This document shows positions 30,301 to 54,104 of a stretch of 64,000 bases of DNA, one piece after another; the first letter of the stretch is position 1, and each line of letters opens with the position of its first letter. This stretch comes from Schizochytrium sp. TIO01 (lineage: Eukaryota > Protista > Bigyra: Labyrinthulomycetes). Both the position numbers and the translations under genes were made by a program. The DNA lies in the NCBI GenBank assembly GCA_004764695.1, contig SMSO01000014.1:1111648-1175647 (forward strand), in the 5' to 3' direction. Under the pieces are notes generated by a model. That model was not told where the DNA came from and did not search any database. It saw only the letters and a list, made by a program, of their open reading frames with translations.

Positions 30301-33300
30301 TAAATATAGCACTCTTTCGTAGAACGCTCGTGCAAGACACTCTCGGAAGTCCCGGTACTAAAATGTTTTCAGCCTGGGAGCCCCCTTCTAGATACCATTG
30401 ATCGGCAATTCCTCAATGCTAGAAAACCGTTTGTCCAGCACGGCTCGAGCTACCATGCAGTCCTCGCGCAGGTTTGATGTTGGAGACGACACACCACAAA
30501 CACAGCAGGAAATATAGAAAACCCATGTTTCGAAAGTTCTCTTTAAGAAAAAAGAAAAGGATTTGGAATGAATACATACATACACACGGTCCTCGCAAAC
30601 TTGATATGTAAACAAATAGTCTGGAGGCCTGGTGCAAGAAGGCATCTTACGTCATTCTCTGAACCGGGTCGGATCAGCAGAGTTAACAGTAGAATGATGT
30701 TTATACAGCCATCAGCTCCGATACTCAGGATACAGGTAGATGTCTACATTGATTTTATGTTACATTGATTTTTTGGTCCTTCAAGTTGGTTCTGTATTGT
30801 AGCTTGAACCGTTCGATGTAATCTAACGTTGCTGCTGTTCTTCGAGTTAGTAGATGAAGCCAATGATTCGTACCGGGTTGAAGAGACGTTCAAGTGTCAG
30901 TGTAAGAAGTTTTGTTTTAGTCAACAATTGACAATGACTATCTTGATAGCCCAAAACATATGAATTGGCCCAAGAACCCCTGAAGGAAGCAACCAAAATT
31001 GGGAAAAATGGGTCTGCTAGATAGTCTAGCTTGTCGCACACGATGACGATCTGATTATTAAGCGGTACTCACCCTTCTTGATCAGGTGTGTCATATAACA
31101 GCAATAGTCGATTTAGAATAGAGTTTGTAAATCATCTATGGGAATAAAGGTCTGTCGGCGGAATATTTCTCTTCATGAGACTCGCTATTGACAGGGCAGT
31201 CAGCATCTACGGCGTACTCAAAATTACCTGTGTGGGGCATTTCGAGTACACCGGTACGCGCCTATCTCGTTACAAATACTATTTATTTACTATTAAGCTT
31301 GAGTCATTTTTTATTATTAAGTTTATTCTCGTTTTATCATCTATTTGTATTTTATAAAAAAAGTTTTTCTTTGACAAGTTTTTTTGAATAAATACTACAA
31401 GGAGTTGGACCTTTGAAACCAAGATATTGCGAAACATTGAAGTTAGTTGAAGTCCTGAACTACTTCGATATTCTTTGATTCGATCTGAATTGAATCTCCA
31501 TCAATTTGGGCAGCGCCTTCTCATTTAATCTCTCAAGCGAAGCCCGGCTCCCTTGAAGAACACTTTTACTACAAATTCCAACCTATACCCAAATATAGAC
31601 TTACATGATGTATGAACGAGAACCAAACAGAGCCAAGAGTCACTGAGAGATTACGAAATTCCTTGGATTAAGACGACGATTACGAAGGGAGGAAAGCATG
31701 AAGCTAGCCCCAAAAGGGTCAAGAACCCCGTGCGGAGGCCTCCATAAACAAATTATAGAGGTAAACATGAACGCTGCATGTCTAAAAGATAAGGAACTGC
31801 GAGAAAGAAAGAAGTACCCTTAGTCTCTAATAAGGCGACTCTAAATTGGTCCAGGCATCATCACAAAATCCAGCCTTGGTTTTCCCAAACTTTGTAAAAC
31901 GCGCGACACGCACCCATCATTATTAGAGAGATCCGATGCGATCGATCACTATACTTCTGTGTGCGTACTTGATCAAACAAAGCCTTGGGATAAGCTTGTT
32001 GCTTGATTTTGAGCACGTCGCATGCTCGGCTATCAGCACGTACCCATGAGTTATCTGATGTGTCAGTCGATCATTATCATCTGATTTATTATGCATATGC
32101 GAACTTCGATTATTAACACTTTCGAGCAATTTAATTTATTATATGTACCTATATCATACAATTTTCAATTTTAAAAGCACCATAAAATAAATATTTACAG
32201 GCTTATACGGAATCTTTGTTATAAAGAAATATTTTAATTACTACACTAAATGTAAAAGTGAAAACTTCGGAACTTTCGCTAATAAGTTCCAGGGCCAAGA
32301 TGGTGACAGCCCGAGGAATAAGAATTTCATGTAGCGTGTGGCCCTGGAGCTTGTACACCATTAAATTACAGGCTCGGCACAACGGACTAGGTCCGTCTTG
32401 CTTTAAATGCCTCGAAAGTATAGCGTTGGTAGCCGCGAAGACTATTAGCTATCCTACTACTTTCGATTGCAGCTCTGAACCTATTCCTGTTCATCATTGC
32501 GAACTCCTGTACATCACTATGAAGAATTTCCGAGTCAATTTCTACACGACTGTCGCAAGATGTATCTAAAATTTCAAACTCTATCTCCAGTTGACTTTTT
32601 GTTGGTCGAAGAGACTAAAAATGAAGAAAATCTCTGGGCAAGTTTTCAATTCCGATTTTTGATCACGCGAGCGAGGGGTTGTTTTGGAATAGCAGCATCC
32701 AGCTTTCCTAAAGCTTTCTTCGAAACTTCAATAGCAAAGCCCGACGCCATCCACCAAAGCCAGGAAGAAGTGGCGTGGAAGCAAAATCAATGGACGTTAC
32801 TAGTTTGTAAGCTTGGGTGCACACCACACCTGACCTTGGTATATCATTTTATTTTTCTTGATTTATCTCAATTGTTCAAAAGCATACAGATCATGGCGTC
32901 ATTTTTTAAAAATAGTTTTCATTTAAAAATAAATAATAATAGTAATATTATTTCTTTATTATTAAAATGCAATATACATAGTATATTTTGAAGCGACTTG
33001 GAGGTTGCACAAGTGCATTGAGTTGCCGCCGCGATCTTCAATCAACGACACACGAAGTCGATCCAGAGTTCGCAATTATAGAGTCGATATATATTTCGTA
33101 AAATTAACAAGCAACTACATGTGTACATCAGTTGTCAGTGGAAGCGTAGGGAGCATGAAACAAATCGGGAATTTATGGTCTCCTCAGGATGAGTCTGAGG
33201 TTCTTGCACACATAGTTTTCTTGAACTCACAAGCAATATGTAAGACCATGGAAGATGCACACTCATTTGGTTTTATTTGGAGCACTTACCTTTCAAGAAG

Positions 33301-36300
33301 AATATTTTCGTGGTGAATTTGGAGGCCCAGACAGTTGACTCGCACGGACTCAATGCAAGTTTAATTAATGCAAATCATAACTAGCGACGTATATTTTCTG
33401 ATCAACAGCAAAATTCCCCAAGATGACCCTCAGCATAGTGCTTTCAGAGATATAGGTTATACAAACACACTAATAATAAAAAGTAATATAATATATATAA
33501 TTGTAGAGTATAATTGTTGGCTACATAAAGTCTAATCCATACATTATCAGGACTGAGGTATTCTGTGTCACAATTCCTTTAGACTACTGTTCGTTAACCT
33601 GAAATTCTACACTATCCGCATGGTCCTTAACGGATATCTGTCAAGATAAACATAGATCTATATCTTTTTTTAAATCATAGAAACATATACGTATAAATGC
33701 AAAAACAACGATCGTGAAGATAAGCCAAGGCTGCACTGACAGAGTAGTTATTAGTGTCTCGACTTTCGAGTGTGTTTCTATTGTTTATTTGATTTACTCG
33801 AAGTACAATTTTCGCCTTTCTGAAATGCAAAAGCTTACCTCTTGCGCATGCTCTCTTATTTGTTGCATGGATTCCGGAGTACATTCCTCTGAGCTTAATC
33901 TGCAAACCGTACGAAAGAGTGATGATGAGAACCATTCGAAGACTTGTTACTTAAGTTTCTCTCATAAAAATAAAAGGTTTTGCGTCTTCAAGGAGAAGAA
34001 ACAGTAGTTTAATTCGCCCTCATAATATGATGAACCGATTAACGTTAATATCATTTTTTCCTAGATAACTACATCTGATGAATTGAAAGAAAGCAACATT
34101 CGAATGTCCTTCAAAAGCTTTTTACAAACCTTTCAAAATTGTCTTTGTCTTTTCTTGTCGTCTTGCAGTGCATTCAATGCTGCCAGGCAACACATTAAAG
34201 AAAAAGACGCAGTTACGTTAGTGAAGTAATTTTAACTCGATCAAATGCATTTTGATGCTACAAAGTCATCTTGTAACTAGCCAGTGAAAATCGTTTGCGA
34301 GATCTTACGAGTAAGAGGAAAGGATATGTCTTGATTCTTTCAGATGATGACTTTAAATGGGCTCTTTGAGTTGAAAATGTCTGAAATGACATTATATGTT
34401 TTAAAAGAATTTTTAATTAAGTGGGAAATATAATGTTGCCTCGTGTAATGCTTCGCCCCTTACTACAGTCAGAATGTCGACGGAGTGCATATCGAATGAC
34501 AAAAAAAATATAAAATGAATCTATGTTCTCGTAGTCACTAAGGAAGGTACATAAAGTAATTGTGCTGCCACAATCAGAGAATTCACATTTTGAAGAACAT
34601 ATGAGATGACTATATTTTCTTTAAAATGAAATTTTAAAATTAAAAAGTTAAATATCGTTTATCTCCAGGTAAACAAGTCTTACTATTTTTTTTTTTTTTT
34701 TTAAATATCATCGTTTACTCTTATTAAAAAGGACAGAATAGATAATAAAAAGTACACCTAAAGATCTCAAATAGAAAACATGTTTGAAACTACCTATATT
34801 AACATTGACACTTCATCCATCCCGAGTCTTTGAAAAGCATTTCAACCCTTGAATGTGCGAGAGGGTGTTAGTTCTTTTGCACTTTTGAGCATAAATTCTA
34901 GGTAAAGCATAAGAAGCCCTTATACGATCGATGGAGACTTCATTTAGCGGAACAACTACCAACCTATAGTCTTGGTTCGAGCTGGAAACCGAAAAATCCT
35001 CCCACGATGATGGGTATGCTACAAACTATTTTAAAATGATTGTAGAGTACTAACTAGCTCGTACCAACCTTGGCACTGACTACATAGGTCGGTGCAAAAG
35101 GTTAGGTCAATTTAAAAGTCGGAAAGCATACCATCTCTCCAATTTCATTTCCAAGCTTGCGAAGTTTGTCGAACACCAACGGTAACGACATTTGGGTTGC
35201 TGCTCTTGACTCAGCTAGCAACTGTGCTTGGTGAGAAAGACTTGTGAAAAAACGTGTCTGCCATCAAGCACATGGCATTAACAAATCTAAAAACCTTTTC
35301 ATTAATATAAATTTAATTATATTTTAATTTTTTAAAATTAATAAATATATAAAAAAGCGCATGAATCATGAATTAGACTTGATTGCAGTGGGAGAAGAAA
35401 ACTGAGTATGGTCATAACAACTTCAAGTTGAATATCTCAACAGCTCAATAGCAGGTATTAAAGTAAAAGCCTGCTCCCTCAAATGTTGACCTTCGAACTC
35501 TGCGAGAGCTTCATTGCAATATTATGCGCACTCGCAGGCTGTCGTTTGAGAGGAAAAAAAGTGTATACGTTGAAGGTAAGCAATTTTTAATTTTATTTCA
35601 GTTGTCGAAGATAGTGGAGCTTCCCCAGGATGAAAACAGGAAACAACAGAATCATTTGAGTCACCTAAAATGAATGCATCTAGCTGTTTCTTTTTCCTTG
35701 TTGCTTGCTGTCATCGCTGTTTTCGCAGACTAGATCAAACTAATGAGGGATACAATTATATACCAATCATTTTCTATAGTAGGGCCAGAAGAAAAAAACG
35801 CATGCACGCGAGATTGTTCCCACAAATGTTTCTGTCAGTTGCAGTCGTACAAAGGAGACATTAGCTCAATTACTTCAATGCATATTACAGGCAGCCTGCC
35901 ATGCTCACTGACACGCTGATCACGCACTCCAAGAAGGACAGTTACTAGACAGATCGCTTAATTTGCAACGAAAACTGAGTGTTGCGTCTTTCATAAACTG
36001 GATAACCTTGATGCTCGAAACACCAAAAGTAGACAGCCAACTGATAGACAACACAAGCTTTTAGCAGCATTTCTTATTGATTGATTTGTAGCTGAACTAA
36101 GAACATACTTCTGACCGATGCATAAGTCACATTGACTTCCCAACGTTGAACTACTTACGGCTTCCTGACCGGAGGTCTTCTCCGTTTGCTTCCATAGGAC
36201 CTTGGCAAAATTAGAATAGCCTGAGAGTATGATAAAAAACCTCTGCTTACAAAATAACAAGCATAAACTTCGGATGCCGAAATTGCACGATTGGTAATGG

Positions 36301-37996
36301 ATACTCAAAAATCAAGAAATAACTGCCAGAGATGCAAAAAAGTTAATTAAGCCTTGCTCCCGCACCAAGGTACTTTTCATCCCACGTTAAATGGAACAAT
36401 CAAGCTTAATATTAACTAGTTTAGTAAAGGCTATCATTGAGTCGAGCAAAAAAATAGCTCCTTTGTTCATGGAGATGCATGTGAGTCCACAGAAAAAGAG
36501 TCTTCAATGTCCTAAGAATACTCTATAGACCAATCGCTGGATAAGCAGATTGTTACATCTGAATGGAGCTTTGGAACAGCTTCTCTAGGTAGAAAAAAAT
36601 GAGGTTTGAAACTGCATTGGGTACAGAACCTTGCGCGACTGATGTATTGTCTCGACAAGTTGCCTTCTCAAGAACTGTGATTAAATGGACGAAGAGTTCG
36701 ACGAGATGCACCGATCCTCTCATTATTTTGGTTCCTTTTTTTCAGACATGATATTTCGATTGTTTTCTCTGACCGAGCATCTTTCGCCAAATAATAGAAG
36801 CCGGCCTAGATGAATTCGCAAAATTATTCATCCCAAAAGAAGTTTATTTCAGTCTGAAAAGGTTGCTTCATAGCCTTCTTCAATGGAAAACAACTCTTAG
36901 ACATTTTGAGTGGCGCAAGTAATGCATGATGTTTGGAAGCTTCATCAGCATCGCTTTTTCGTTTCTAAGGTTCTCATTTATTTAGACATTCACCGGATCA
37001 GCTTATTACTATTCACTCCATAGTATTTAGCTAGCATTTTTAGCCTTGGTAAATAATCTTATTCAAGTTAGAGCAAAGCACTCAGGTGTAGTTACGCAAA
37101 GCCTTTTTTCTTGGCTATTTTTGGCACCTTTCGCGAAAATTGAGAAGTTGCTACCTAGTCACATGACTTGAAACACTCAATGTACTTCCCAAGCTTTCTA
37201 AAGCAAAAGCCTCAAGCAGAGGTGGTCTCCTCCTATCAATCCTTCACCTGATTGGTAAAATCTTACTTTATCAAAGCATTCTATCGCTTGCCATATATAA
37301 CCCGTCTAGCACGATAGGTAGTAGAGTAGTAGATGTCCTAGCTTCCTACTACTGCTCCGGCCACTGCTCAGTTGCTCTGAAAAGAGCAATTGATGGTTTT
37401 AAGCTGCTCCATGTTGAGGGAGGAGGTCGCGTAAAGATCCTTGCGAGCTTGCGTCGGTGTCATTTGGTACTAAGGTAGGTGGGTATGTAGGTACCTAGTG
37501 TTTCTCTACAAACGCACTTCGCGGATAAACACATGGTAAATTCTGGGAAAACCCTTTGACTTGACGGTGTGGAGAACGTGCCATTCAAGGTGCCAAAGCA
37601 CTGAATATGGAGTTTCCGAGCGGCTTTGGCCATGTAATTAAGAACTTCTAATGTGCTGTTTCGAGCATCGCAGCAAAAGCAGTTAGTTAGCTATACCATC
37701 TGCACAAAGGCAAGATTCCACCTTACAGGTGCAGACCTGCGAGGCACACGTCTTGAAAGCCCGCCGCAAGGAGCTAGAGCTGCTCTTAAGAATTTAGTCC
37801 AACCTCGATTCGAAGTTCTCGTCCCCGTAGCATCCACGATTCGCTCCGCACCAGAAAGAATCCGCACCAGGGCATGCTGCCAAGATAGATTTCCAACGCT
37901 GGCTCACGGCCTTGAACAGCCTCGGAGCATTCTATGGACAACGTGAAGAATACCAATCTGGAGGTCTCGCTCGATGATGAGATGGTACTTGCTCGC

Positions 37997-38047
37997 CAAG
38001 CCCAAGCTCAAGCTCAAGCTCAAGCTCAAGCTCAAGCTCAAGCTCAA
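37997..38047. repeat. (CAAGCT)n hexanucleotide tandem repeat
   Basis: Seven perfect CAAGCT copies at 38003-38044 plus partial flanking copies. Confidence 0.95.
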
Positions 38048-39093: not shown

Positions 39094-40100
39094 ATGGAGC
39101 ACGCGCATTTGAAATTCTGGACACGCATGGCCTTAGCAGTTGTATATTCCGTGGTAGGCGCGTAAAGAGTCTCGGAGGAGGAAGATTGCGTGTCCGAAAA
39201 GGGCTTGTGGAATAAAAGACGGTGGCAGGCAAAGTTCATTTGGCGCTCCAGACAAAGCTAGCTCGTTTCACGCTGGAGGGCGGAAGCTGCTGCTTTCGCG
39301 TGTCTCGGGGCCGTTTATAGGTCGCTGCAGAAGACTTTAACGCCACCTTTCAGCTTCACCCCTGTTCTCGCCTGGCTTGCGCGGAGGCATTGGGCATCCG
39401 GTCGGAGCCGCTTTTTTGAAAAACTTTCTTCTCAGTTTCCTTGCGATTCTGCCGTCTTTTTTGTTAAACCATCACTCTGCTTCCTTCCTCTCTGTCCAGA
39501 TATACTCCTCTCTGCGTCTCGTTTCCTGTCCTTCTGGCGCTCCAAACGCGCAGACCACGAGACCTCCTGTGGCAACGGGGGCCTGCTCCGCTGGCTGCTG
39601 CTCTACGTCAGCACCTCCTCCGATCTCAAGGGCCAACTCTATTTAGGTAGGCTTTTCCTCTTTCCTTGTCTCCCCTGTATTGAGGTCCTCCGCGCCACCA
39701 ACGCGCGCAGAGCAGAAGTATCGAGGAGAAGCGTTAGAGCCTGGTTGCTGGTGAAGGTGTGGCAAGTGACAAAGGTTACGAGCAAGGCGTTGGCGGCAGC
39801 GCAGAGCTGACCCAAGCTGAGCCTGAAATAAAGGGGCGAGTGTTGGTTGTTGCTGTGAAGAGTCCTCGTACGAGCAGTGCAGAACACAACGTTTCGTGAT
39901 CAGCAAATTGCGTTGCGGCTGATCATTGTTGGGCCAAATTGTTTGGCTGGTTGATTTGTACTAAGCCTTTGAAACTCCAGTGATCTTCGCCTGAATAGAT
40001 TTGGGATCTATTGCTTGATACGGTCCGTATCGCCCAGCGCGCGGAGCGCTGCTGCGACTGCAGACTATTGTAGAAGCAGAGTTTTGAACAAGCACAAGAT

Positions 40101-43100
40101 ATGCAGGAGGCCGTAAGCGAGGCCGTTGCTCAGCTGCGCAAGGGCGCCAGCGAGGTGACGTAAGTATTCATTTTTGGGATTAAATACGCCCTAGCGACAC
40201 TACAAGATAACGGGTGGCAGGTGATCGATCATCTGGTGGAAGAAAACTTATGATAGACTAACAGAACAACTGCGGCATAATTCCACACATTGTATGGCAA
40301 ATTCATGTGAGCAAAATACAGTCTCGAAGGCTGCAGCATTGATCAGGAGAATGCCAAAGTCTTGGCGGAAGCAATCCAGCAATCGACCACATTAACTTGT
40401 TTGTTGTAAGTGAGAATCGGGAGGTCTGTGCAGGTATTCAAGCGCACCAATGTATATACTAACTTGTTGAAATTTTGCTTTCGTCATCGCTCATTACATA
40501 TCTACAGTCTCAATGGGAACGACATTGAAGATGATGCTTGCGATGCATTGACTCACGGTTTTGCACATAACACTTCGCTCACAAACCTCAAGTAAGTTTT
40601 CAACACCTGATGAATTTTTTATTTGTAAGTTTCTTTTATACTAATTCTTTTGGTATCGTGGTTTCGTGATACTGGCAGTCTTTATGGCAATGGTGTGAGC
40701 ATCCAAGCTGCTCGAAGAATTGCAGATGTCCTCAGGCATAACTCGACATTGACAAGTCTAGTGTAAGTTCCTAATCGAATGCAGGCTGCAAATGTGAACT
40801 CTTATTTGGAATCCATGAAGCTGACATCATCCTCACGATTGCTGTACTCAATAGGCTTGACCGAAACAATATTAATGCGGAGGCTGCTACGTCTCTTGCC
40901 GAGGCACTTAAGGAGAACGATTCTTTGACGAGCTTAGAGTAAGTTTTGGTGTCTCTCCTCGATGCTGTTTGTTTTTACGTTTTGCTATTGTTCAGGTCCT
41001 AACGTAATGGTTCTTCAATATGAATTTTTCATTGTCACAGTCTTGAAGATAATGATATCGGGTCCGTAGGCGCCTCCTCACTTGCTGGGGCGCTTACACA
41101 TAATCATCTTCTACTCACGCTTGTGTAAGTTTTGATTTTTTTAGCATGCACCTTACACGTATGGTACTGACGATGTTCTTATATTTTTATCTCCGTATGC
41201 ATTTTGGAGACACAGACTTGATAGTAACAGTATTACTGCCGAAGGTGTGACTGCTCTCGCTGAAGCATTAAAACACAACACGAGCTTAACAACACTCGAG
41301 TAAGTTTACCACCAAGTTTCTGGTCTCGACGTCATTGTGGTTTCTGACATTATATGTGGTTTGAATACACTGGTTCATTTTGCTTAACAGTCTCGGAGCG
41401 AACACCACCAGTGATGCTGGCGCAATTGCCTTGGCAGATGCGTTGAAGCAGAATCGATCTCTCAAGACGCTAGTGTAAGTTTCCAAAGCCCAATCTCTTT
41501 AGAGTTCTCATGGATAACTAATAGGTCTCGTTATGATGCTTTATGTTTCATTTCTACAGACTCGACCGGAACAAAATTGGCATTCCTGGTGGCACTGCTC
41601 TTGCCGAAGCTCTAAAGCAAAACACTTCGTTGGCAAATTTGAAGTAAGTTTTTACAATATGGAAACACAAAACAGATTATTGTGCGAAGAAACTAACTCG
41701 AAAGTAAATTTCATTCTGGTGTGTAGCATTCGCGGTAATGCCATTGGAGTACCTGGGGCGATCGCCTTTTCTGAGGCCTTGAAGCAGAACACATCTCTCA
41801 CCAATCTGTTGTAAGTTTTTTATTGTTTTTTTTTTGCATTTCTTCAAATGTTGATTTACTAACTGCGTTTGTTCTGGTTTTGATTCTGTAACATAGCCTC
41901 TGGTCGAATAGCATCGGGGACACTGGAGCCTCAGCTCTTGCAGATGCTCTAAAGGTTAACCGGACGCTGACCAACCTATTGTAAGTTAAAATTGTATTGG
42001 TCAGATATTCTTGAATTGGTATCTTTACCACGATGTGTGATGAAATATGTCTAACAACAGAAACACAATTGAACTCTTGCAGTCTCTCGTGGAACCAGAT
42101 CACCGACGTAGGCGCCAAAAAGCTTGCAAGCGCGTTGAAGAGGAATAACGTGCTAACCAACCTTGAGTAAGTTCCAATAATACATTCTAGGCTTGATCTA
42201 AGCAAGGACGTATATGCTAACATTTAGCTTACCATAATATTCACAGTCTTGCATTTAATGAAGTCCGGGCAGAATACTATTCTAGAATTAACGCGTATCT
42301 TGAGCGTAATAAGCAGCACACCCTGAGTATCGAGGACGACTCATCAGGAAGCTCAGGGTCAGGTACTAGCTCGGAAGCACACAGCCACTTGAATGCGTTC
42401 TCGGACTCTGACATTCAACTTCTTGAAGGATGGAAGTCTCGTCAAGTTGGCAATCCATTGGCTAGTCTCACGAGGCCCGAAGAACTGTGTCAACAAATTG
42501 CAGAAAAGCGCACGGTCTTTGAGCGGATGCAAGATCAAATTCGCGATTCGCAGGTAGGGGATGTTGCACTTCGTGATGCCGTTCGCGCTGAGCTTATTCA
42601 ACTGTTGCGCGAGGCTCTCTCTATCAACCTTGAACAATGCATTGCACAGGCTAACCAGAAGTTGAATAACGAACTCCGTGCACGTGTCTCGAGACGTCTT
42701 CATGAATTGCATGCTGAGGGTAACGAAAGCCACGACGTGGCCTTTGAACACGTGCACGATGGAGTTGCTGCTGCTCTCCGTGTTATTTCGGAATGGAAGC
42801 AACGACACAACAACTCTTCTGGGTGGCCTGCCGAGTCAGATCGGAGTGATGAGACCATACTTTTAGACTCTGAAAAGTCTCCTGAGGCAAATGACCCTGT
42901 AGCAAACCAACCAGAAGACAGCCAAGACAGTGGCCATGATTCAGAGCCCCCTCGCACCGAACTGGAAGATGCCAACACTGTGTTCAAGCAGGGTGTTGCT
43001 ATCTTCCAAGGTGATGGAGTGTCTGGTGACGCGCCTTGGAAGGAGGTTCAAAAGGCATTGGCCCTTATTGACTCCTTCTACAAGCGCACCGTTGCTGCAC

Positions 43101-44986
43101 TGTTGCTGCGTTTGAGAACCTCGTTTGCAGATTTTCACAAACTTCTCAGCTTCATTGCTCAAGGTGCGACTCCACCTGACTCTTCATGTCTTGAAGAAAT
43201 GTTACGACAACTAAAGGTGGAGCGTCGCAAGCGTGATCGTCTTTGCTTGGACTTGAAAGATGTGAAGGAGGATATCTTTGATGCTGGCTCAGATGCTGAG
43301 CGGGATCGTCTTAACGCTAAGATTTGGGAACTCGAAGCCCAAGTCCGGGAGATTGATCTGCACAAACTTGACCGCAAGGCGCGTCAGGCACGTGCGCGCT
43401 TGCTCCGGGCTGCGCAAGATCATTACCCAGAGCTCTTGTGGGATCAGGACTGGTGTCGCAGGATTGGCATCTCAGATCAGGCGTTTCTGGAGGTTAGCTA
43501 CCTAGGCCTGTGGCTTGAGGGAACTCGTGCTGTGGACTTTGAGACTGTCCGCAGCCTGTCCTCTACAAATGGTAAAGTTGTTCTTGCTGTGAAGAATGCC
43601 CAAGGAGAAAATCTTGTTCTGAAAAAGTTTCCTCTGGCAGAAGAGCGTGGGAGCAGCCGATTTTGTCGACAGGTTGCCGCCCTTGCTGTTATAAACTCGG
43701 CACATGTCATTCGCATCACTGGCCTGTTTATTGACCATGACGAAAGTATCAGTCACGGTTGCATTCTCATGCCCTACTATCCTCAAGGGGACTTAGCTTC
43801 TTGGATTCTACAGAACGCTCATGCAGATGAAGAGACATGCAAACGTATCGCAATTGGCGTACTTTCGGGAATTCACGATCTGCATAAATGTGGTCATGTC
43901 CATTGCGATATTAAACCAGCCAATATTTTCTTAACGTCAAGTCTCTCGCCAGTGATTGGAGATTTTGACGGTGTACAGCAGGCTAACAGGACTATGACTC
44001 ATTCATTGCAAGTTACGTGGAACTACATTGCACCCGAGATTCGGTTTGGGGGTCTAGACAAGGTGAGCGAAAAGGTAGATTTGTACTCCGCGGGCGTTCT
44101 GCTCGAGGAATTGTTTCCTCGGCCACGCAAGTCTATGCGGCAGCTCATCATCAAGCTTAAAAGCGAAGATCCTGCGGAACGTCCCAGTGCGCTTGATGCA
44201 CTCCAGCACCGTGCGTTCAACACCAAACCTGTGAGACTTCGGTCGTGTATTATCTGCCTTGATAATCTACCAGCTCCACATGGTGTGACATGTCGTGGCA
44301 GCCACTTTGTCTGCAAAGATTGCGTCACTGGATCTGTGGAGGCTGCCTCGCTTCCTGAGACTTCTGTCAAGGTAACTAGGGATGGCACAATGCAGTGCAT
44401 GTCACCAAATTGTGATCATATCATTTCAGGTGCTGATATTGCTCGTCAGGTACCACAAGAGTCGTTCGACAAGCTTATCAAGATTGTGCGAGAGCATATG
44501 GAACGAGATGTTTCAATTTCCCAAGAACGTGAGGTTCAGCGAAGGGTTCAGGAGGCCCTTTTTATGGACGGTCTGAATAGAGATACCGAGAGGCACTTGC
44601 GTCACATTCAAGATCGCATTCTTTGCACATGTTGCCCTCGCTGTCATACAGTGTTTGATACGTTCAATGGTTGTTGCGCTCTCAAATGTAGCAACAGCCG
44701 TTGCAAATGTCGATTTTGTGCATGGTGTCTTGAGGACACTGGAAGTTCTACTCAGGCATGTCATAGACATGTTGCGGATTGTCCCAAGAACAATAGCAAG
44801 GAGCACGACCCTTATTTTCCAGCAAGCTTTGAGATTGTTCAGCAAGCTTGGATTCGCGTGCGTGCTGAGCGTTTGCTAGATTATTGGAAACGAGAGATCC
44901 AGACTGAGGAGCTTCAAAATGTTCTTCGTGAGCGCCTGGCGCCTTTGTTGACGCCAGATGTTGTAGGCGAAGGCTTCATACTATAA
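40101..44986 (+). CDS. LRR (RI/NLRC3-type, 11 full repeats plus cap) - helical/coiled coil - non-RD protein kinase - RING - Rcat/RING2-like protein; 13 exons, ~1240 aa
   Basis: Exons 40101-40159, 40322-40405, 40508-40591, 40679-40762, 40855-40938, 41041-41124, 41216-41299, 41391-41474, 41560-41643, 41727-41810, 41897-41980, 42083-42166, 42247-44986. The total is 3723 nt with an open frame, and all 12 donors are gtaagt with YAG acceptors. Kinase at ~43538-44218 (VLKK, HCDIKPANIF, GDFD, YIAPE, DLYSAG); C3HC4 RING at 44246-44413; CPRC..GCCALKC..C..FCAWC..H..C at 44633-44782. Confidence 0.92.
40322..42166 (+). repeat. Array of eleven 84-nt single-LRR exons separated by 83-102 nt phase-2 introns
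   Basis: Each exon encodes LxxNxIxxxGAxxLAxALxxNxxLxxL(x), e.g. LDRNNINAEAATSLAEALKENDSLTSL and LWSNSIGDTGASALADALKVNRTLTNL. Confidence 0.93.
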
Positions 44987-45768
44987 ACTTGTGTAAAACA
45001 AATTTAATTATGTAGGTAGTTGTTGATATGATTTAATAATATTCACTAAACCTTTTTTCTTTTGTCGTCATTTTTTTATTATTAAATTGGTATGTGTCTT
45101 TTGGGGGTCATTTGTAATGCTAGGTATGAGTTTTCTCTCTTTTAAAAAAAATCCAGGTATGTAGCTTTGAAAGTGTTTCCAGAGAGAAACGCGAGTAACA
45201 ATACAAATGACCATCAAACGTCCTTACCTTTTATTACAGAAAATACAAACACGGAATTCACGACCCTCGCACATAGCATTAGAAAGAAAAAGAAATGCGT
45301 CACGCAGCCCATGATGCTAATGAACTAGTGCTATCAACATTGACATTACTTGACGCATTTGAAAACATGTTCACCTTAGTGTTGGTATCTCAATTTTTTT
45401 AATATTTGAATTGCTCTATTCGATTTCAACCAGCAGCGATCGATTACCTGAGCTTGAATTCTCTGTTTTATCGATGACTTTTTGCGAAATAAAAAAAGAT
45501 CGCATTGTCCTATATGAAACATTTAGATTTTGGTGCTTTTTACATGGTCAATAAAGGACACTATTTTCATGTAGATAGAAACTATAGGTAAAGTCATGCA
45601 AAAGCTTTATAGTTTTCGAAAAAGCAAAACAAAACCAAACCTCTTTATCTATATACTAATTCTCATTTCTCTCTACAGTTGAGCGATTTAAATGTTTCGC
45701 CACAATATTCAAGCTGAAAATCGTTCATAACTTTTGGATGAACTTATTTATAAAATTCAAGGATAAGT

Positions 45769-46172
45769 AAGGGAGAACAAAAAGGATGACGACAGGCGAA
45801 CCAAGAGAATAAAACCACGCACGCATATTTAAGAAAGTCCTTTCCATAGCATAGAGCTTAAGATAACACATTTATTTTTGCAAATTCCAAAGATATTCAA
45901 GTTAAAGGAGGTCAGAAAGGCTAATCAGTCAAAGTCACGTGCATCTATGCTCAAACAAGAGGTTTATTCTACATAGCGTAGAGATCCAAATCAGACAAAT
46001 ACTGATGAGACAATTTCTTCTTCTAAATTTATAGGGCAAGTAAATCAAGGGAGGACAGAAAGAATGACAAGGTAAAAAATCACGCACAAATGTTCAAGAA
46101 AACCTTTTTCCATAGCGCAGTGAGCTGACGGTGAGCATTTGATGATCAGATAATTTTTTCGTTCAAGGAGGT
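45769..46172. repeat. Diverged direct duplication (~130-140 bp units at 45769-45912 and 46047-46172)
   Basis: Shared blocks: aagggagaacaaaaaggatgac / aagggaggacagaaagaatgac; cacgcac..aagaaa..tttccatagc..gagct; aaggaggt. Confidence 0.7.
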
Positions 46173-46455
46173 GTGTGTAGGGAGGAGGGAAGGTTGTGAA
46201 CAAATTTACAATTACTTTGTTTCCTTAGATCTGGAGTTCAAAATCATATCTCTCAAACCACTTCTGCAAGTAAGCAAGGCGTTATCAATCAAGAAAAAGG
46301 TAAAGTTCTATGAAGGAAAAAAGCAGTAGCTTGTAAAGATGTAAATGGGGGATGTATAGGGATAAATGGGTGAGGAAATCGCAGAAAAGCACAAAAGAGT
46401 CAATGCATAAAGTTATGCTTGATTCAAAGAGACAGGACCATTAAATCCTTCACGC

Positions 46456-46791
46456 CTATTTTTTCATGGTGGGCTGGAGAATGGGGGAGTCCTTGAGGGA
46501 TTCCATGAGCTCAATCTCGTCCTTGGCCTGGAGCAAAAGCTCCTCAATCTGGCCACAGTCAATCTCCTTCTCGATCTGCTCCTCATCCTCGTACTTCTCC
46601 ACAACGCTGAGGCGGTAGTTGGTGATCTGCTCCATGCTCTCACGGTATGGCACGCCAGACGGGATGGTCTTGAGCTTGTCAAGAGTCTCCTTGTAGGTCT
46701 CAATCAGCACCTGGCGAGCATTCTCCACCACGGGCACGCCCACAATACCAGTGGACCGCTTGGCGGCCATGAGCACACGAGAGGCGAGCAT
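46456..46791 (-). CDS. NDUFA5: NADH dehydrogenase (ubiquinone) 1 alpha subcomplex subunit 5 (B13)
   Basis: STGIVGVPV..AR..L...Y..TL..L..IP....YR...EQIT..RL..V......IE..IDCGQIEELL.QA.DE; ATG at 46791. Confidence 0.95.
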   Translation of the reverse strand: MLASRVLMAAKRSTGIVGVPVVENARQVLIETYKETLDKLKTIPSGVPYRESMEQITNYRLSVVEKYEDEEQIEKEIDCGQIEELLLQAKDEIELMESLKDSPILQPTMKK

Positions 46792-49754
46792 TTTGTCTGG
46801 TTTTCTCACAGAAACTATACCTTACCTCCAAATCACCACCCTGGTACCTCTCGTCAAGCCCAACTTTCCACGCCGACGTATCCACCTTTGCGCAGCAGCC
46901 CTTCGCCACGCACTCAATCGCTTCTACTCCTCCTGCTGCTCCTCTTCTCCTCACGTCCTCTCTCTTTCTCCCTTCCTCTCCTTATTACTCCTATCATTTA
47001 ATTTAACTATTCTCTCCCTTAGACATTCCTTCATATATCATTCATCTCTTCCCCGCCCTATTCTCACACCTAATACATACATACAGAAATGAATAATATA
47101 CATACATACATACATACAAACATACATTCACCTGTACGATTTACAGATAATATTCATACGTGCACGAGTGAAAGTATTTATTTAGGACTACACATCACAG
47201 TATTTTTATGCACTTTGCTTCTTCAGCAATGAATCAATGATTGAATGAATCAATGAATGAGTAGATGAATAGATGAATGAGTAATCGAGCACAAATACAG
47301 TGAGCGCACGATAAACCATCACACTCATTATGTATTTATTTATTATTCACGCATTGTCTCTGCATACCCTGCCTCTACCTTAAATACCCACCTTATATTC
47401 GCTTCAGGGCAGCAGCAGCCAAACCTAACCGAGCCGCAGCCAAACCTAACCGGCTAGCGTGGCAGCTGTTCTTTGGTGGTGTTCTACTGTAGCGGAGGAG
47501 TCGAAGAACACCTCTGCGGCAGCGGAAGGGGAATGCGGGGAACTGGCAGGGGCCAGGCTTTAGGAGAGTGATACGAAGGCCAACGCGGTAACTCAACAGG
47601 CTGAATTTTGAGAAAAAAACTTGACACCAAGGTGCGCAGGGTGCGCAGACATGAGAACGTGGATTTAGGTTGTGATGGATGGAGTGGAGAAGGTTTGGTT
47701 GACGACAAGGAGGATTGCTTAATGATTGCCTCCTTGATGTGTTTGTTTTCTAAAAGACGTTTGCTTTTAAATTCAAGCTTCCTCAAGATTGATAAATCCC
47801 GGTCTTTTTACCAAGGCTTGGACTGTGTCGAAATCAACCTAAACTTTATTTAGCCTCATTTGCTGCGATAGAGTCAATTATAAACTAGATTCAAGGTTAT
47901 CATATGTTCATATGTGTCTTTTCAGTCACAATTACAAATTCCACCGGAAGTTGCTAGCTCATCAAGAAAATTTAACTAGATAGGAGCTTGAGTACTTCAT
48001 CAGATCAGTTCAGTGACTGGAGCTGTGTTCTATACGAGGGTTTAAATATAGAAATGACCTGGATTTCCGGCACAAGACGATGTGTAAACTGTTTGAAAAT
48101 ACCTTATGAGAAACAGTATTGCATGAGGGATGCTTTCGGATCGTTCATCTGGCCCTTGCCTGTGACATCTTCAACCAGTTCTTGAAAAAAGCATCACCGT
48201 GAGAGGATGGGGAGATTAGGATCTTGCTTGAGTGAGTCCAACAATATTCGTTTTCTTCAATAGGGCCTTTCCAGATGGCTTAAATCTTCGATAATTTATC
48301 CTGCGATAATCACTGAGCAGATATATTCTCTCCACTAAATGCTAAGTCATTCGATTTGACTTGGAGCTGAAGAACGTGCACCGTCTTCGATCACAGCTCG
48401 GGTATCATAAGACCTACACCGGCGACATTGGGAAAAGATACGAATTGGTGACAAGTTTTAGATGATCTCATCGACTGCGTTGTAAATTAAAATCCAATCC
48501 CTATATGCTCTCAAATCTACCAAAGTTGAGCCCTACAACTTAGATATTCCATTAACTCATATGCTTAGGTCTCGGGACTACGAAGCCCCAGAGTGCACAT
48601 TATGTAATCTGTGCCTGCTCGATTAATCGGTCGATACCTATGCACACGCAAATTCAATTAAGACATGAACATCTAAATTGGACATGGTTTTGGCTATCGA
48701 TTTTGATGGCTAATCTTCAAGATCCCAAGTCCCAGTTTTTGCAGTGTTACAACATTTACTTCGAAGATGCCCATGCATACTTAGTAGTCCTATTGTCGCC
48801 ATGATCTGCTACGTCAGGTCTATGACGCAGATCTGCGCCGCGTTTATGGTTTATGTCCGCCCGAGAATAATTTTCTTTCCGTACTTCCTACATAGGAAAA
48901 TACTATATGGGTGCCTTACTTCATCTTACTTACCAGCAAATTCACAGAGTACCTATATCCTTTTAAAAAATAATATTTTAAAATATGAGAAAAAAACGTA
49001 TCTAACAAAAGGCAGACTGATATTCACGCGCTCAAAATAGATAGCCAAATCGTTATCCACAAGTTCTCGAGTTGCTGCTTTGCGCGTGTCTTTGAAGGCA
49101 GTGTATAGCACTGGTGGAGCTTTGTTCCTTCCTGGCTTCTTGTCTTCAACTTGCTTCATTTCCCTTACATTGCTTCCTCCTCTATCCCTCAAGCCTCGAG
49201 CCTCAAGCCTCAAGCCGAGTGTTTCTTGGGCATGAATGAACGATTGCAATTTAGCTTTGCCAATTAGTGGTACCTGTACTTCCTATTCGGCCCTAGTCCC
49301 CTTCGCTCCTCGTCTTCTTCACTATTTTTCATATCCTAGCTTTCACTAGCTATTGCCATTTATTTATTTATTTATGAGACTTTTCGCTTCAAGTTTATTT
49401 TATCTCCCCAAACAATCATACTTTCAATGCAATAAACTTTAACTTTTGGTTTTTTATTTTAAAGAAAAGGTTTAAAAAGGATACCGATGACCCACTCGCA
49501 CAAACGCATCCTCATCATCAGCCAACTTGAACCCACTCGAAGCCTCATAATAGCCACCCTCCCAGAGCGACCTAGAGGCCGAAAACCCTCGCAAGATTCG
49601 AAGCAACGCCACTCTATGGCCTGTTTGGACAAGTTCCCGGCATCGTCTTCGGCATTGCACAAAGTTTCTTTCCAACGAAGGAACTTGTTTGCGACCGTCA
49701 TCGCTCAATCGTTCATCTTTCTCATTACATGACCAACACACGTGCGATTTTGAC

Positions 49755-49829
49755 ATGAATGAATGATTGAATGAATGAGAATGAATGAATAATGAATGAA
49801 TGAATGAAATGAATGAATGAATGAATGAA
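49755..49829. repeat. Imperfect (TGAA)n microsatellite
   Basis: Direct reading. Confidence 0.9.
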
Positions 49830-51521
49830 GGGCGATCGTTGTTGAAGGTTTCTTGGACGAGGACCACAATCGTCTTCGAGTCGTTCGCTGGTTCGTTCGT
49901 GAGAGCGGAAACCCATCCCACCTCCAAAGCAGCACGAGTGAGACCACCAGCGATGGCACGTGGTTTCTGGCTACAAGGTGACGACTGACTGAAATCCATA
50001 GCCTTCCTCTGATGAACTTGAAGAATCAGAGACAGACCTTGAACTTGAAGATGCCGAGACTGATGAAAACCAGTCGAAAACCAAACCCAGTTTTAGAAAC
50101 CTGCATCCTGATCGTCTTCAGCCAAGATAAGATCTACTCAAAGCCGACGCTCGAGGCTCCAGTTTGTTGACAGACGGCGGCGAATTGATCAAGATTTCGC
50201 GGCATCATGGTCGATAAAGCGTAGTAGGCATTTTGGGGGTTCCGGAGCGCTTTCTTCCGCAATAACAGCGCAGTGTATAGATTATATAGATAGGCCTATC
50301 AATCAATCAATCAATCAATCAAACAAACAGGAAAATAAGTTGAAAGAAAGAAGTGAATAAAAAGCAATTGAGAATGTCAAGAAAAAAAGTACATTATCTG
50401 AGCCAATAGCATGGCAGTTGGTCTGGCAACTCTTAAGTTGGCTGAGCTATCTTCATCATGCGCGTTTGTGAAGACGAAGGAGGCGCTTGGCTGGCTGTCG
50501 GGTGCCTTTTATTGGTTGATTGGAGCGGACCTGCAGCGATAATGACCTGAAGGTAAACTGAAGAGCGAGAAACAGATTTATTTTTGGTCGTTTTTCTGTC
50601 CTTCCCTTCAATACTTTAACTACGCGCTACTTATTGGGTGGGTATTCTGAGGTTTTATTTAACAGCGCTTTGTGAAAGTCAATAAAAGAGCATGCGCCGC
50701 AGAATACAGTAGCTGGAAAGACGAAGAACTCGAGGGCCCTGCGACACTAAAGCAAAGTCCTTTCGCGGGCCAGACCTTTGGCGTGTTTGCGAGTCCATAT
50801 GCATGGTTTCGTGCGGCTTTCTTCGCAGTTCGAGGATCGAGGTGGATGAAGTGACTAATAAAGCCACAACTGTTTAATTTGCTTTCCTGGTACATTCACT
50901 CTAAAATACTTCTTTATATGTATTTATCTGCCTATTTAAATTTTTAATTAACAAACAAACAAATAAATATAAGTAAAAACAAATAATACTACTACCATGG
51001 CTAATAATAATACTACGAATAACAAATCGAAAGTAAAAGGATAAACAACAACAAAGCACCTTTTCAACCTCTGCTTAAAGATGAAGAAAAGGGTGGGCGG
51101 TCAGATTGCCTTTTTCGCGCTGATACAACTCAAAGCAGAGGGCGGTGATCTCGCATCTGCGCTAGATTCTCTGGGGATTCTTTCATTCATTCTTTCTTTC
51201 TTTCTTTCTTTCATTCACGAAACAGCTCATATCGTGCCAATACGCAGATACGGCGATGGCCAATTCTCAAGCCGCATCTTACTCATCGCGAGTATGCTCG
51301 TCTCAGCGTACGCATGTTCTCGCGCAAAGAGCTTCGAACGACGATCGTCAGAGCGTAGTGGAAGCAGAAAACGACCAACAGCTCGTCAAAAGAGAGCTGT
51401 GCAAACCAATTCACTAATCGGCCGATCGATTGAAACTCGGAGTGGATTGGACTGATTTCACTGACAGGAAATTACAATGGAGAACCAGCATCCCGGAAGC
51501 GCGAGAGGTGGCCAATTGAGG

Positions 51522-51552
51522 ATCAATCACCAATCAATCACCAATCAATCAC

Positions 51553-51591
<39 letters not shown>

Positions 51592-51620
51592 CTAATCAAT
51601 CAATCAACCAATCGATCAAT
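51522..51620. repeat. Imperfect (CAAT)n microsatellite with CACCAATCAAT units
   Basis: Direct reading. Confidence 0.9.
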
Positions 51621-52183
51621 TCATGAAGAGAGGATGGAAGAAGGAAATGCAAAACCTTCGCGAGAGCAACTGTCTATGCACAGTTGATGAATCTATGCAC
51701 CGCATCTTCTCTCGCTAAGCCTGTACATCCTTAGGTTCGTTCAATCATTCATTCATTCATTCATTCATTCACTCGCTCCTCCTTTTACTTTATATTTACA
51801 TTTCTATATTTATTTTAGTTTAATTAAATTAAACACTAAAAACAAAGATAAATTTGGCAATCAAAAGCAGTCGGAGTAAACTCAAGAGAGAAGTACAAAG
51901 TACATGAAGAGCCAACCAAAGTCCTGAGAAAAACCAAAAGTAAATAAATGAACTTCAATCAACCAAACGAATGCTTTGCTTCAATCAGAACTCCCTTTTC
52001 TTTGCCCTTCTGTTTGCGCTCCTTTCCCCCTTTTTCCCATGCCCGCTCTTCGTCGCTTCTCCCGCTCTTCTGTCCTTATGTCCGTAACTCTTCCATTCTC
52101 TTTCTCTTCTTCCCTCTCTTTTCTCCTTTCTCCCCACCTTAGCTGCCAACTACCTAGAAAGCTAGTAATGGTCCAATATTGAC

Positions 52184-52226
52184 AATAAATAAATAAATTA
52201 ATTAATTAATTAATTAATTAATTAAT
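52184..52226. repeat. (AAAT)n/(TAAT)n microsatellite; the TAAT part is self-complementary
   Basis: aataaataaataaattaattaattaattaattaattaattaat. Confidence 0.9.
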
Positions 52227-54104
52227 GACATTGGCGTTGTTTTGGCTTTAGCTTTTGCTTTTTGCTTCTTCTCTCAAAAGACTCAGCAATAAAAGAGTCG
52301 TCTATGTCCTACTACCGCTACTCCTACCATAACTGCATCTACTCTTACCCTGCACATTACGCATGCGCAATGAATTACCTCTTGCGAGGCCTAGCATTTG
52401 GACTATGTGGGGTGCTATCAGAGCTGTTGATGAACAGCCTTCTTTCTCTGGCGGGGTGCTATGTGCCTCATAACGTTAACCATAGTACCAGTCCCCAGCC
52501 ACCGCATGTGTACTTGGCGATGGTCTTGATAGATAAAGATTATGTACTATGTATTTAGGAACCTCCTATCGCCATTAGAGTGCAATATGAAGTTGCTGTG
52601 AATCTGTGACGCACCGCTTCTTTCTTTCCCTCTTATGTGATTGTGTATTTGTTTGACATGATCACTCAATTAATTGTTCATTCATTCATTTATTCAATTA
52701 GCTATTCATTCACTTATTTTTAATTATTTCAACATTTAGTCATGAGTTGTTTATGTTTTACATTTTAAACTAAAACAACGTTTGCTCTCAATGTCTTTCT
52801 TGAGCTGCTTTTGGTGAAAGGAGAGCGACAGGAGATAATAAGAGAACAAACCAAAGGGTTCTCCGGCTTCCGCTTCTACTAATCTAATCTTGCAGTCCCT
52901 ATCCTTGCCTCTTTTTGACGAGGCACTCGAACATTACAAAGTTGGAGCTGTTTTCTCTCAGGCGAGGGTCATAATCACACACTCGCACATTCACAAGAAA
53001 GATAGATCTGCACAGCGGGTTAGCGCTGGGTTTATAGAAATGATGGTCGACGCTCAGTCTTGTCTTGTCTGGCTTTGGGCAAAGGAATCACTATGTGCGT
53101 ACAAACATACGTACGTAGCGACCGCGATTGCTCGACGATAATCGATAATCTAAATAAAGGTGATTGATTGCTCTTCGTTGCTTCTCTCTCTTTTTTTTTA
53201 TTTTATTTTATTTTTAACTAAAAATGTTTTCACCTAAAATGAAAAGTTAATCATTCTTTTGAAAAAGAAAAGTTTGAAGTCAGAAGTTATCAACTTTTTA
53301 AAGAAGGAAAGAGCTTAAAACAAAAGTGGCAAAAGAAGAGGAAGTCAATCGGTCGATCAATCGATCCGTGCAGACCGCCAAGCTTGCGCTCTGGCCGGCA
53401 CAGGCTCGGAGGAGACGCCACGGCGTACCTCCCCGCCCTCGCCGCAGACGCCTGATCCCGCCGCCTCCCACTGGCCCTCTGCGTCGGTCGGCGCTTCGGC
53501 TTTGGTCTTTCCGTTCGACCAGACAGACAGACAGACAGACAGAGAATAATTAACAACGACAGCCAATTTAGGAATAAGCAACCTCAATCCGGATCTCTCG
53601 GGCGCTCGGGCTCCCGCCTCGCCTCTCGCTCCGAGACAAACACCTCAGGGCGAAACCCTCTTCGCAGGACTTCGACCCGTTGTCCACGTCAGGCCGCCGC
53701 TAGAACCTCTGGCCAAGGGCCCGCCGCCTGCCTGGAATACAGCGAGGGCGGTCCGCTTGCGCCTCCCGAGAGCGCCACGCTGCGCGAACAGGGCCTCCTC
53801 GTTGGCGGTTCTCTTAGGCTTTACAGTAGGAGTTCGGTAGGAGTCACTGTGGCAAGGTACTGGTAGGAGGACTGGCTGCTGCTGGATACAGCGGAAAAGC
53901 AGAGGTCATTGACAAACTTGTTGAGACTGTATTGCACTGCGTAGCTTGCTTTGCGAATCGCAAGGCTCAGGCTGTGCTTTGCGAATCGAGAAGCTTTGAG
54001 CCACTCAAATTGCTTCCCTGATTGATTCATTGATTCGTTGATTGATTGTTTTGGAACTCTGGAATCACTTGGACTGGGATAATTCGAAAAGCGAACAAGC
54101 AAAC

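Follow-up and report, generated by a model that had tools for sequence, protein, structure and literature searches.

An array of 84-nt leucine-rich-repeat exons in a Schizochytrium kinase gene is constitutively spliced and probably a historical footprint

The 64,000-nt stretch of Schizochytrium sp. TIO01 DNA analysed here (the window, located at C13:1.11-1.18 Mb of a 64-Mb genome in 37 contigs) contains a gene in which leucine-rich repeats (LRRs) are encoded one to an exon; all unprefixed coordinates are positions in the window. Parsing of the sequence places the gene at 40101-44986 on the forward strand and divides it into 13 exons, of 59 nt, eleven times 84 nt and 2,740 nt, with AG immediately before and GTAAGT immediately after every 84-nt exon (exons 2-12). 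All 12 introns measure 80-162 nt, begin with GTAAGT, end in YAG, interrupt the frame in phase 2 and hold one CTAAC, CTGAC or CTAAT 26-60 nt upstream of the acceptor. The cut always falls (12/12) in codon x5 of L-x-x-L-x5-L-x-x-N, the LxxLxLxxN strand, a residue that lies in the beta-strand on the LRR fold's concave side. Translation starts at ATG 40101, the first ATG downstream of an in-frame TAG at 40071, the stop codon ends at 44986, and exon 13 is without an intron. An earlier note, made from the letters of this DNA, had described eleven one-repeat exons of exactly 84 nt and twelve alike phase-2 introns cutting the same codon. That description proved correct to the base in both the sequence parse and the transcripts, and the twelve exon-end dinucleotides are as it listed them (ac, tt, aa, gt, ga, gt, ga, gt, aa, tt, tt, ga).

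Chance is excluded as the source of the exon pattern, since 13 of the 21 GTAAGT hexamers on the forward strand of the window are packed into the 2.1 kb of the array, for which base composition predicts about 0.6. Outside the gene, GTAAGT counts in the window are at or under chance, and the rest of the window carries long uninterrupted open reading frames (ORFs) of 626-941 aa; both make plausible the figure of 4 introns that the earlier note gave for all other genes of the window. ORFs reaching 200 aa are missing from two tracts, 28000-38000 and 45000-54000, where G+C is 36-44%, the remaining window being full of long ORFs. The gene has a chromosome-internal position, at 1.15 Mb in a contig of 7.46 Mb, and its repeat unit of exon plus intron amounts to 167-186 bp.

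The spliced product is a protein of 1,240 aa which opens with 12 LRRs of ribonuclease-inhibitor (RI) type, continues through a helical region into a kinase and closes with a RING/Rcat-like tail. The database protein P0001 (1,240 aa, from a transcript contig) differs from the spliced translation by one residue, A315S; it was used for the searches with the joined product, and the exons were searched separately. Its 90% cluster, drawn from Logan, JGI and MMETSP, has members of 1240, 1240, 1243 and 865 aa, the last of these being a piece. The 1243-aa entry (P0156, MMETSP) departs from the rest of the cluster in its last six residues and is longer by three, perhaps through a frameshift or because the 3' end was assembled differently. 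The TAXON_ID given in its header belongs to a fungus in the NCBI taxonomy and was disregarded.

The repeats follow the 28-residue RI-type consensus xLxxNxIxxxGAxaLAeALKxNtsLTnL, and LRR_6 (PF13516) matches P0001 with an E value of 1.4e-33, at 112.7 bits against a cut-off of 23.4. The last of the twelve repeats is degenerate and is encoded at the start of exon 13. The helical region, of roughly 400 residues, has no Pfam match. The kinase scores 108.6 bits with PF00069 on P0001 (cut-off 31.7), and its translation contains VAVK, HCD, DFD (not DFG) and APE; it is predicted to be of Ser/Thr type. Pfam gave no RING or IBR match on the tail, in which C1137 aligns with the Cys of the ARIH1 GGC motif, which we take, from Parkin and HHARI, to be the catalytic Cys. 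No signal peptide or transmembrane segment is found in the product, which is therefore expected to be cytosolic. On P0001 there is no NACHT or NB-ARC Pfam match, the NACHT matches of the genome lying elsewhere, and no Roc or COR match, Roc ORFs being present at other loci. A sensor-kinase-ligase function would suit this order of domains.

The module of helical region, kinase and tail is old and widespread, and was found in 128 clusters at E <=1e-30. In the thraustochytrid Hondaea it is joined to ankyrin, or to LRR_6 plus ankyrin (P0002, P0004, P0013), in the ENA protein P0015 it is joined to a WD40 propeller, and relatives are also present in a dinoflagellate and an ichthyosporean. This suggests that sensor domains have been swapped on a conserved signalling module in protists. 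The features of the gene and its product are collected in Table 1.

Table 1. Exons, introns and encoded domains of the LRR-kinase gene, in window coordinates
Feature	Position	Strand	Description and evidence
Exon 1	40101..40159	+	59 nt; start codon and degenerate C-terminal half-repeat, ending at the same repeat position as the cassettes; joint 40159>40322 in 4 runs
Intron 1	40160..40321	+	162 nt, GTAAGT...CAG, phase 2, CTAAC 60 nt from acceptor; unspliced form also seen
Exon 2	40322..40405	+	84-nt LRR cassette 1; sequence and transcript joints
Intron 2	40406..40507	+	102 nt, phase 2; sequence and transcripts
Exon 3	40508..40591	+	84-nt LRR cassette 2; sequence and transcripts
Intron 3	40592..40678	+	87 nt, phase 2; second GTAAGT at 40625, unused
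Exon 4	40679..40762	+	84-nt LRR cassette 3; sequence and transcripts
Intron 4	40763..40854	+	92 nt, phase 2; sequence and transcripts
Exon 5	40855..40938	+	84-nt LRR cassette 4; sequence and transcripts
Intron 5	40939..41040	+	102 nt, phase 2; unspliced form also seen, in two runs of one study
Exon 6	41041..41124	+	84-nt LRR cassette 5; sequence and transcripts
Intron 6	41125..41215	+	91 nt, phase 2; sequence and transcripts
Exon 7	41216..41299	+	84-nt LRR cassette 6; LRR_6 match, transcripts
Intron 7	41300..41390	+	91 nt, phase 2; sequence and transcripts
Exon 8	41391..41474	+	84-nt LRR cassette 7; sequence and transcripts
Intron 8	41475..41559	+	85 nt, phase 2; sequence and transcripts
Exon 9	41560..41643	+	84-nt LRR cassette 8; sequence and transcripts
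Intron 9	41644..41726	+	83 nt, phase 2; sequence and transcripts
Exon 10	41727..41810	+	84-nt LRR cassette 9; sequence and transcripts
Intron 10	41811..41896	+	86 nt, phase 2; sequence and transcripts
Exon 11	41897..41980	+	84-nt LRR cassette 10; LRR_6 match, transcripts
Intron 11	41981..42082	+	102 nt, phase 2; sequence and transcripts
Exon 12	42083..42166	+	84-nt LRR cassette 11; sequence and transcripts
Intron 12	42167..42246	+	80 nt, phase 2; sequence and transcripts
Exon 13	42247..44986	+	2,740 nt; twelfth LRR (degenerate), then helical region, kinase, Cys-rich tail, stop codon; joint-free contigs in 4 runs
Protein kinase domain	43568..44116	+	PF00069, E 2e-31 to 4.6e-31; HCD catalytic loop, DFD replacing DFG, APE
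RING-like Cys/His cluster C995...C1020	44246..44323	+	translation by eye and nearly invariant Cys/His columns of the family alignment
Rcat-like (RING2) zinc module	44633..44788	+	phmmer against PDB: ARIH1/Ariadne-1, E 2.7e-4 to 2.7e-3

Splicing was followed in the transcript contigs of 4 public runs (3 studies, 3 organism labels), aligned over 39800-45300. All 12 predicted GT..AG joints, and no others, are present in the contigs of the 4 runs, every one of them between consecutive exons, and a single contig of 4,611 nt covers the mRNA from end to end. The share of sampled words present was about 0.36-0.45 in these RNA runs and 0.79-0.87 in DNA runs, the RNA value being as expected with the introns missing. 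Transcript contigs also continue unbroken for more than 850 nt 5' of the start codon (301 nt within 39800-40100 and a further 559 nt beyond, in one run), a stretch that represents either a long 5' untranslated region or a contig bridging a neighbouring gene.

Alternative events were limited to retention of two of the twelve introns, 1 and 5. Unspliced intron 1 was found in contigs covering 40130-40351 in two runs and, at low depth (about 1.5%), 40149-40345 in a third, and unspliced intron 5 in contigs covering 40909-41070 in two runs of one study. The unspliced depth of these introns was roughly a quarter to a third of that of the spliced path (two runs, one study). DNA contamination seems a poorer explanation for this than slow splicing or retention that is selective for these introns. 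The combination of phase 2 and GTAAGT puts an in-frame TAA right after every exon (xxG TAA GT, 12/12 introns), so that any retained intron truncates the protein at once. In the younger paralogs described below, the GTACGT donor reads TAC and gives no stop.

The earlier note had seen in these symmetric phase-2 cassettes a device for combinatorial alternative splicing, through which one gene would supply many receptor isoforms. Skipping or reordering of the exons would indeed be frame-safe, with no stop among the 144 donor-acceptor combinations, and there are precedents in the skipping of exon 5 of NLRP3 (PMC6642158) and in splice variants of the LRRs of Ectocarpus ROCO genes (PMC11378527). The arithmetic holds, but it is uninformative: twelve dinucleotides avoid TA and TG by chance about 1 time in 5, a constitutive junction must be a sense codon anyway, and phase symmetry is automatic where the units are copies of one another. 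No exon-skipping or other non-consecutive joint occurs in the contigs of the four runs, although the assembly graphs resolved minor alternative paths with 30+30-nt flanks for two other events, so that an abundant skip junction should have shown. Nor does the 90% protein cluster contain a member shorter by a multiple of 28 aa, and the sole alternatives, retention of intron 1 or 5, lead straight into a stop codon. Combinatorial use of the cassettes is hence very unlikely. The transcript data portray a gene that is constitutively spliced, in consecutive order.

The repeat units of this gene are anciently diverged, to the point of saturation. Mean pairwise identity among the eleven 84-nt exons is 49%; by codon position it is 0.56-0.61 at positions 1 and 2 and 0.29 at position 3, against 0.26 by composition. 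The intron cores give an alignment score of 0.561, compared with 0.555 +/- 0.006 after shuffling. No exact match between units exceeds 12 nt, and repeat blocks are just 60-80% alike, leaving no substrate for homologous unequal crossing-over. Over 39800-42600, Tandem Repeats Finder returned a poly-T-like 11-mer and no array, and we accordingly rejected the array as a tandem repeat at the DNA level.

Exons 5, 7 and 9 are mutual best matches (60-62% of nucleotides), as are exons 8 and 10 (61%). All three pairs among exons 5, 7 and 9 rank in the top four of 55 pairs, for which the chance is about 0.025; two-exon units may thus have been copied at some time during the growth of part of the array. 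Across 186 exons, nearest neighbours in the same gene and in other genes are equally distant (41-52 of 84 nt), and a repeat-by-repeat comparison with the two closest paralogs (L012 and L011) yields no clear diagonal, so that a per-exon phylogeny would carry no signal.

The last exon has at least 50 scored and 276 candidate paralogs in the genome, intron-free ORFs of 35-52% identity, and we read the 10 kb upstream of 20 of them (L011-L030). In 19 of the 20 upstream regions there are LRR exons of 84 nt in the same frame and with the same AG/GT borders, between 3 and 19 or more per 10-kb region, and in one region there are none. Identity at third codon positions ranges across the arrays from 0.29 in the gene at 40101-44986, the most diverged of the 20 arrays compared, through 0.30 and 0.33 in the two paralogs closest to it, up to 0.86-0.93. 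Introns of the three old arrays measure 66-120 nt and mostly have GTAAGT donors, and these arrays lie 1-2 Mb inside their contigs. The other, young arrays have intron medians of 220-380 nt and mostly GTACGT donors, and similarity among their introns often exceeds that among their exons (0.95-0.99 against 0.75-0.79, for instance); an exception is L013, a young array whose donors are GTAAGT and whose introns are of 237 nt. Of the 50 paralog tails, about half are within 250 kb of a contig end. That paralog arrays differ in exon number supports growth by unit duplication for the family, and at this level the duplication of an exon-plus-intron unit is real; on the simplest reading it still goes on in the young paralogs.

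A pattern of three GTAAGT donors, each separated from the next by 84 nt and a short intron, was matched 33 times across the genome, at about 13 loci (control, 0+6). One of them, an old-type array at C32:2779648-2780194 (+), lies upstream, at a distance of 1 kb, of an ORF of 848 aa that matches Roc (C32:2781249-2781500, +). Comparable frames with a Roc match, some 25 in number and about 850-870 aa long, occur at scattered places in the genome, many near contig ends. Further pattern loci are C13:4096251, C13:6074213, C13:6373288-6374472, C14:77693 (= C31:32034), C30:1347385, C30:6583481-6584872, C30:6620645-6621341, C30:9622683 and C34:3002417-3002936; none of those on C13, C14, C30 and C34 adjoins one of the 50 listed kinase tails. 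The cassette is thus probably not confined to the kinase family, and a second, ROCO-like family may be built on the same LRR cassettes.

A further proposal of the earlier note was unequal recombination. On a reading of this kind, the cassettes of the array would still undergo unequal crossing-over or gene conversion with one another, be it in the germline or in somatic cells. Such a process does operate in this genome, as the near-identical units of the young paralogs, with introns up to 0.99 alike and very unequal unit numbers, attest. It has no support for the gene at 40101-44986, where the divergence of the units, the saturated third positions, the unalignable introns and the lack of longer exact matches are joined by constancy between strains. 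The same 12 joints, exon number and exon order were found under three organism labels. Among the window, P0001 and the MMETSP/JGI protein, A315S is the only difference in the LRR domain, beside four substitutions in the tail, and transcript-derived proteins of 1240, 1240 and 1243 aa depart from the model by 1 to 4 residues, bar the C-terminal end of the 1243-aa entry. The LRR face of the gene is conserved, not hypervariable, and ongoing reshaping of its array is exceedingly improbable. The earlier note had itself set against its proposal a single isoform with constant exon order across strains together with a lack of paralogous arrays; the former is what we saw, as far as the contigs show, whereas paralogous arrays exist.

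Arrays of this kind are known from other lineages, and the precedents that the earlier note had cited, Ectocarpus ROCO genes (PMC3341825) and human NOD/NLRC genes with one 28-aa LRR per exon (PMC6642158), are correct. The closest published parallel is with Tetrahymena, which possesses tens of thousands of LRR exons of exactly 90 bp, with phase-2 introns and an amino acid encoded across the junction (PMC6564038). There, old LRR genes are located on chromosome arms and have short introns, young ones are subtelomeric and their introns are long, fusion to a protein kinase domain is seen in some arrays, and clonal expansion of an exon-intron unit has been proposed (PMC6564038). The Tetrahymena authors knew of no other organism with arrays of fixed-length phase-2 LRR exons (2019, PMC6564038). 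Both systems have one fixed-length LRR exon per repeat, introns (nearly) all in phase 2, a variable number of exons, and age classes in which old arrays are internal with short introns and young arrays are found at chromosome ends with long introns. They differ in that the exon here is 84 nt (28 aa, RI-type) rather than 90 nt, the host is a stramenopile rather than a ciliate, the family comprises tens to a few hundred genes rather than thousands, and the tail combines a kinase with a RING/Rcat-like region.

In most human NOD/NLRC genes one 28-aa RI-type LRR is encoded per 84-nt exon, with the exon border at a fixed place in the beta-strand and strict preservation of frame (Hoss et al. 2019, PMC6642158). 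The repeat class, the repeat length and a border inside the beta-strand are shared with the gene described here. The effector differs, there being no NACHT here and a kinase with an RBR-like tail instead, and no counterpart was seen of the abundant exon-skipped isoform of NLRP3. This resemblance favours an alternative in which the intron positions would be no local invention: an ancient gene with RI-type LRRs would have passed them on, with the border inside the beta-strand that animal NOD/NLRC and RNH1 genes also have, and the pattern would reflect deep intron conservation. The occurrence of the same cassettes upstream of a Roc-containing ORF at one other locus also speaks for it. Against it, other lineages have reached the design with units of other sizes (72 nt, Ectocarpus; 90 nt, Tetrahymena) and with other borders, which indicates that convergence is easy, and the ROCO gene adjoining the window has its Roc domain in an uninterrupted frame of 2,080 aa, so the cassettes are not universal for the LRR genes of this genome. 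Deep conservation is, on balance, unlikely.

Brown algae are likewise stramenopiles. Their ROCO genes have LRR exons of 72 nt (24 aa) of another LRR class, which start at the GxxP loop and whose repeat is encoded by nucleotides 3-71 (Zambounis et al. 2012, PMC3341825; Teng et al. 2024, PMC11378527). From this last statement the intron would fall after the first codon base, the published label being phase 2. The ROCO genes, like those of NB-ARC-TPR type, are candidate receptors with reported splice variants and diversifying selection, and in Ectocarpus orphan and reverse-strand cassettes are found within introns (PMC3341825, PMC11378527). One repeat per exon and a variable number of exons are common to these genes and ours. 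Conversely, the introns of our gene differ in the codon position that they interrupt and in their place within the motif, its effector is a kinase with an RBR-like tail rather than Roc-COR, and its introns (80-162 nt) are too short for orphan cassettes; none of the 12 contains an open 84-nt cassette, so the orphan and reverse-strand cassettes that are a hallmark of Ectocarpus have no equivalent here.

We found no paper on LRR exon arrays in thraustochytrids. A preprint on the genome of Aurantiochytrium limacinum describes the DNA of young arrays as anonymous LORE-TEARS spacer repeats (bioRxiv 10.1101/2023.06.15.545109). The young paralogs with LRRs, a kinase and an RBR-like tail, whose arrays correspond to these LORE-TEARS repeats, agree with the gene at 40101-44986 in architecture, in the 84-nt exon and its frame, and in where the introns lie. 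They consist of near-identical tandem units of 366-529 bp, often at chromosome ends, whereas the present gene has diverged units of 167-186 bp at an internal position, 1.15 Mb from the contig end, and shows no Tandem Repeats Finder array; it is not a LORE-TEARS element. It does have the marks of a one-LRR-per-exon gene, namely an exon of fixed length, a shared phase and position of the introns, and an exon number that varies among paralogs. The mark of recent duplication, nucleotide similarity of whole units with their introns, is confined to the younger paralogs.

Taken together, the exon anatomy, the splicing, the age of the repeats and the spectrum of the family are probably to be read as the record of an old and otherwise ordinary, constitutively spliced gene of an Aurantiochytrium-type thraustochytrid, so that the exon pattern is a historical footprint and not a working device for diversification. 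On the pattern of the exons themselves, the array would have originated by unit duplication: an ancestral unit of one 84-nt exon, encoding a 28-residue RI-type LRR, and one phase-2 intron may have been copied in tandem. Copying of such a unit would give every copy the same length, phase, donor and intron position, and would place 12 introns within 2.1 kb and none in the next 2.7 kb or in the paralog tails. In the gene at 40101-44986 this copying would be ancient and long finished; the units have since diverged to saturation, while the introns would have shrunk to 80-162 nt and the exon number become fixed. The spliceosome removes the 12 introns in order, giving one cytosolic protein of 1,240 aa with a sensor-like LRR arc, a helical linker, a Ser/Thr-type kinase and a ubiquitin-ligase-like RING/Rcat-like tail. 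Diversity would then be germline-based, residing among the at least 50 paralogs, of which the younger arrays would still be duplicated and homogenised.

Several observations weigh against this interpretation. Similarity of sequence between the units has gone, so that an origin by unit duplication has to be argued from shared phase and position. Contigs drop rare variants, and exon skipping at a low level is therefore possible. The RNA and DNA data that contain the gene all come from strains at least 99% identical, and the constancy of exon number covers such strains. No ortholog above about 55% identity was found: homolog searches with the tail and with residues 340-760 gave only the gene's own cluster, a scan of protein representatives gave family members at <=53% identity, and a metagenome scan gave generic kinases and two short contigs without upstream sequence. 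Among the nearest relatives is GBG25141.1 of Hondaea fermentalgiana, with a tail 53% identical. Lastly, the repeats have no clear one-to-one match with those of the closest paralog, which makes the array undatable relative to the gene duplication.

It is tempting to speculate that the gene keeps its cassettes for rare or conditional exon skipping, or that it is a conserved hub or helper for the many hypervariable subtelomeric paralogs. Skipping of this sort would tune the length of the LRR arc, by analogy with exon 5 of human NLRP3, and a hub or helper role could be likened to that of plant helper NLRs. We regard either prospect as improbable; if true, a protist would possess a two-tier LRR-kinase-ligase recognition system.

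The interpretation that we favour, a footprint of past duplication in a constitutively spliced gene, provides a clean, RNA-validated example of a repeat gene in which introns have multiplied together with exons, in an otherwise intron-poor genome. It also carries a caution, in that the shuffle-ready symmetry of exons is by itself no evidence of combinatorial splicing. Furthermore, the LRR exon arrays of this one genome can be ranked by age, with the gene as the fixed point at the old end of a series along which units diverge to saturation, introns shorten from about 220-390 to about 80-100 nt, donors change from GTACGT to GTAAGT and the exon number becomes frozen. A comparable trajectory has been described only for Tetrahymena, and the 84-nt arrays of a stramenopile thus indicate that the design is a recurrent one.

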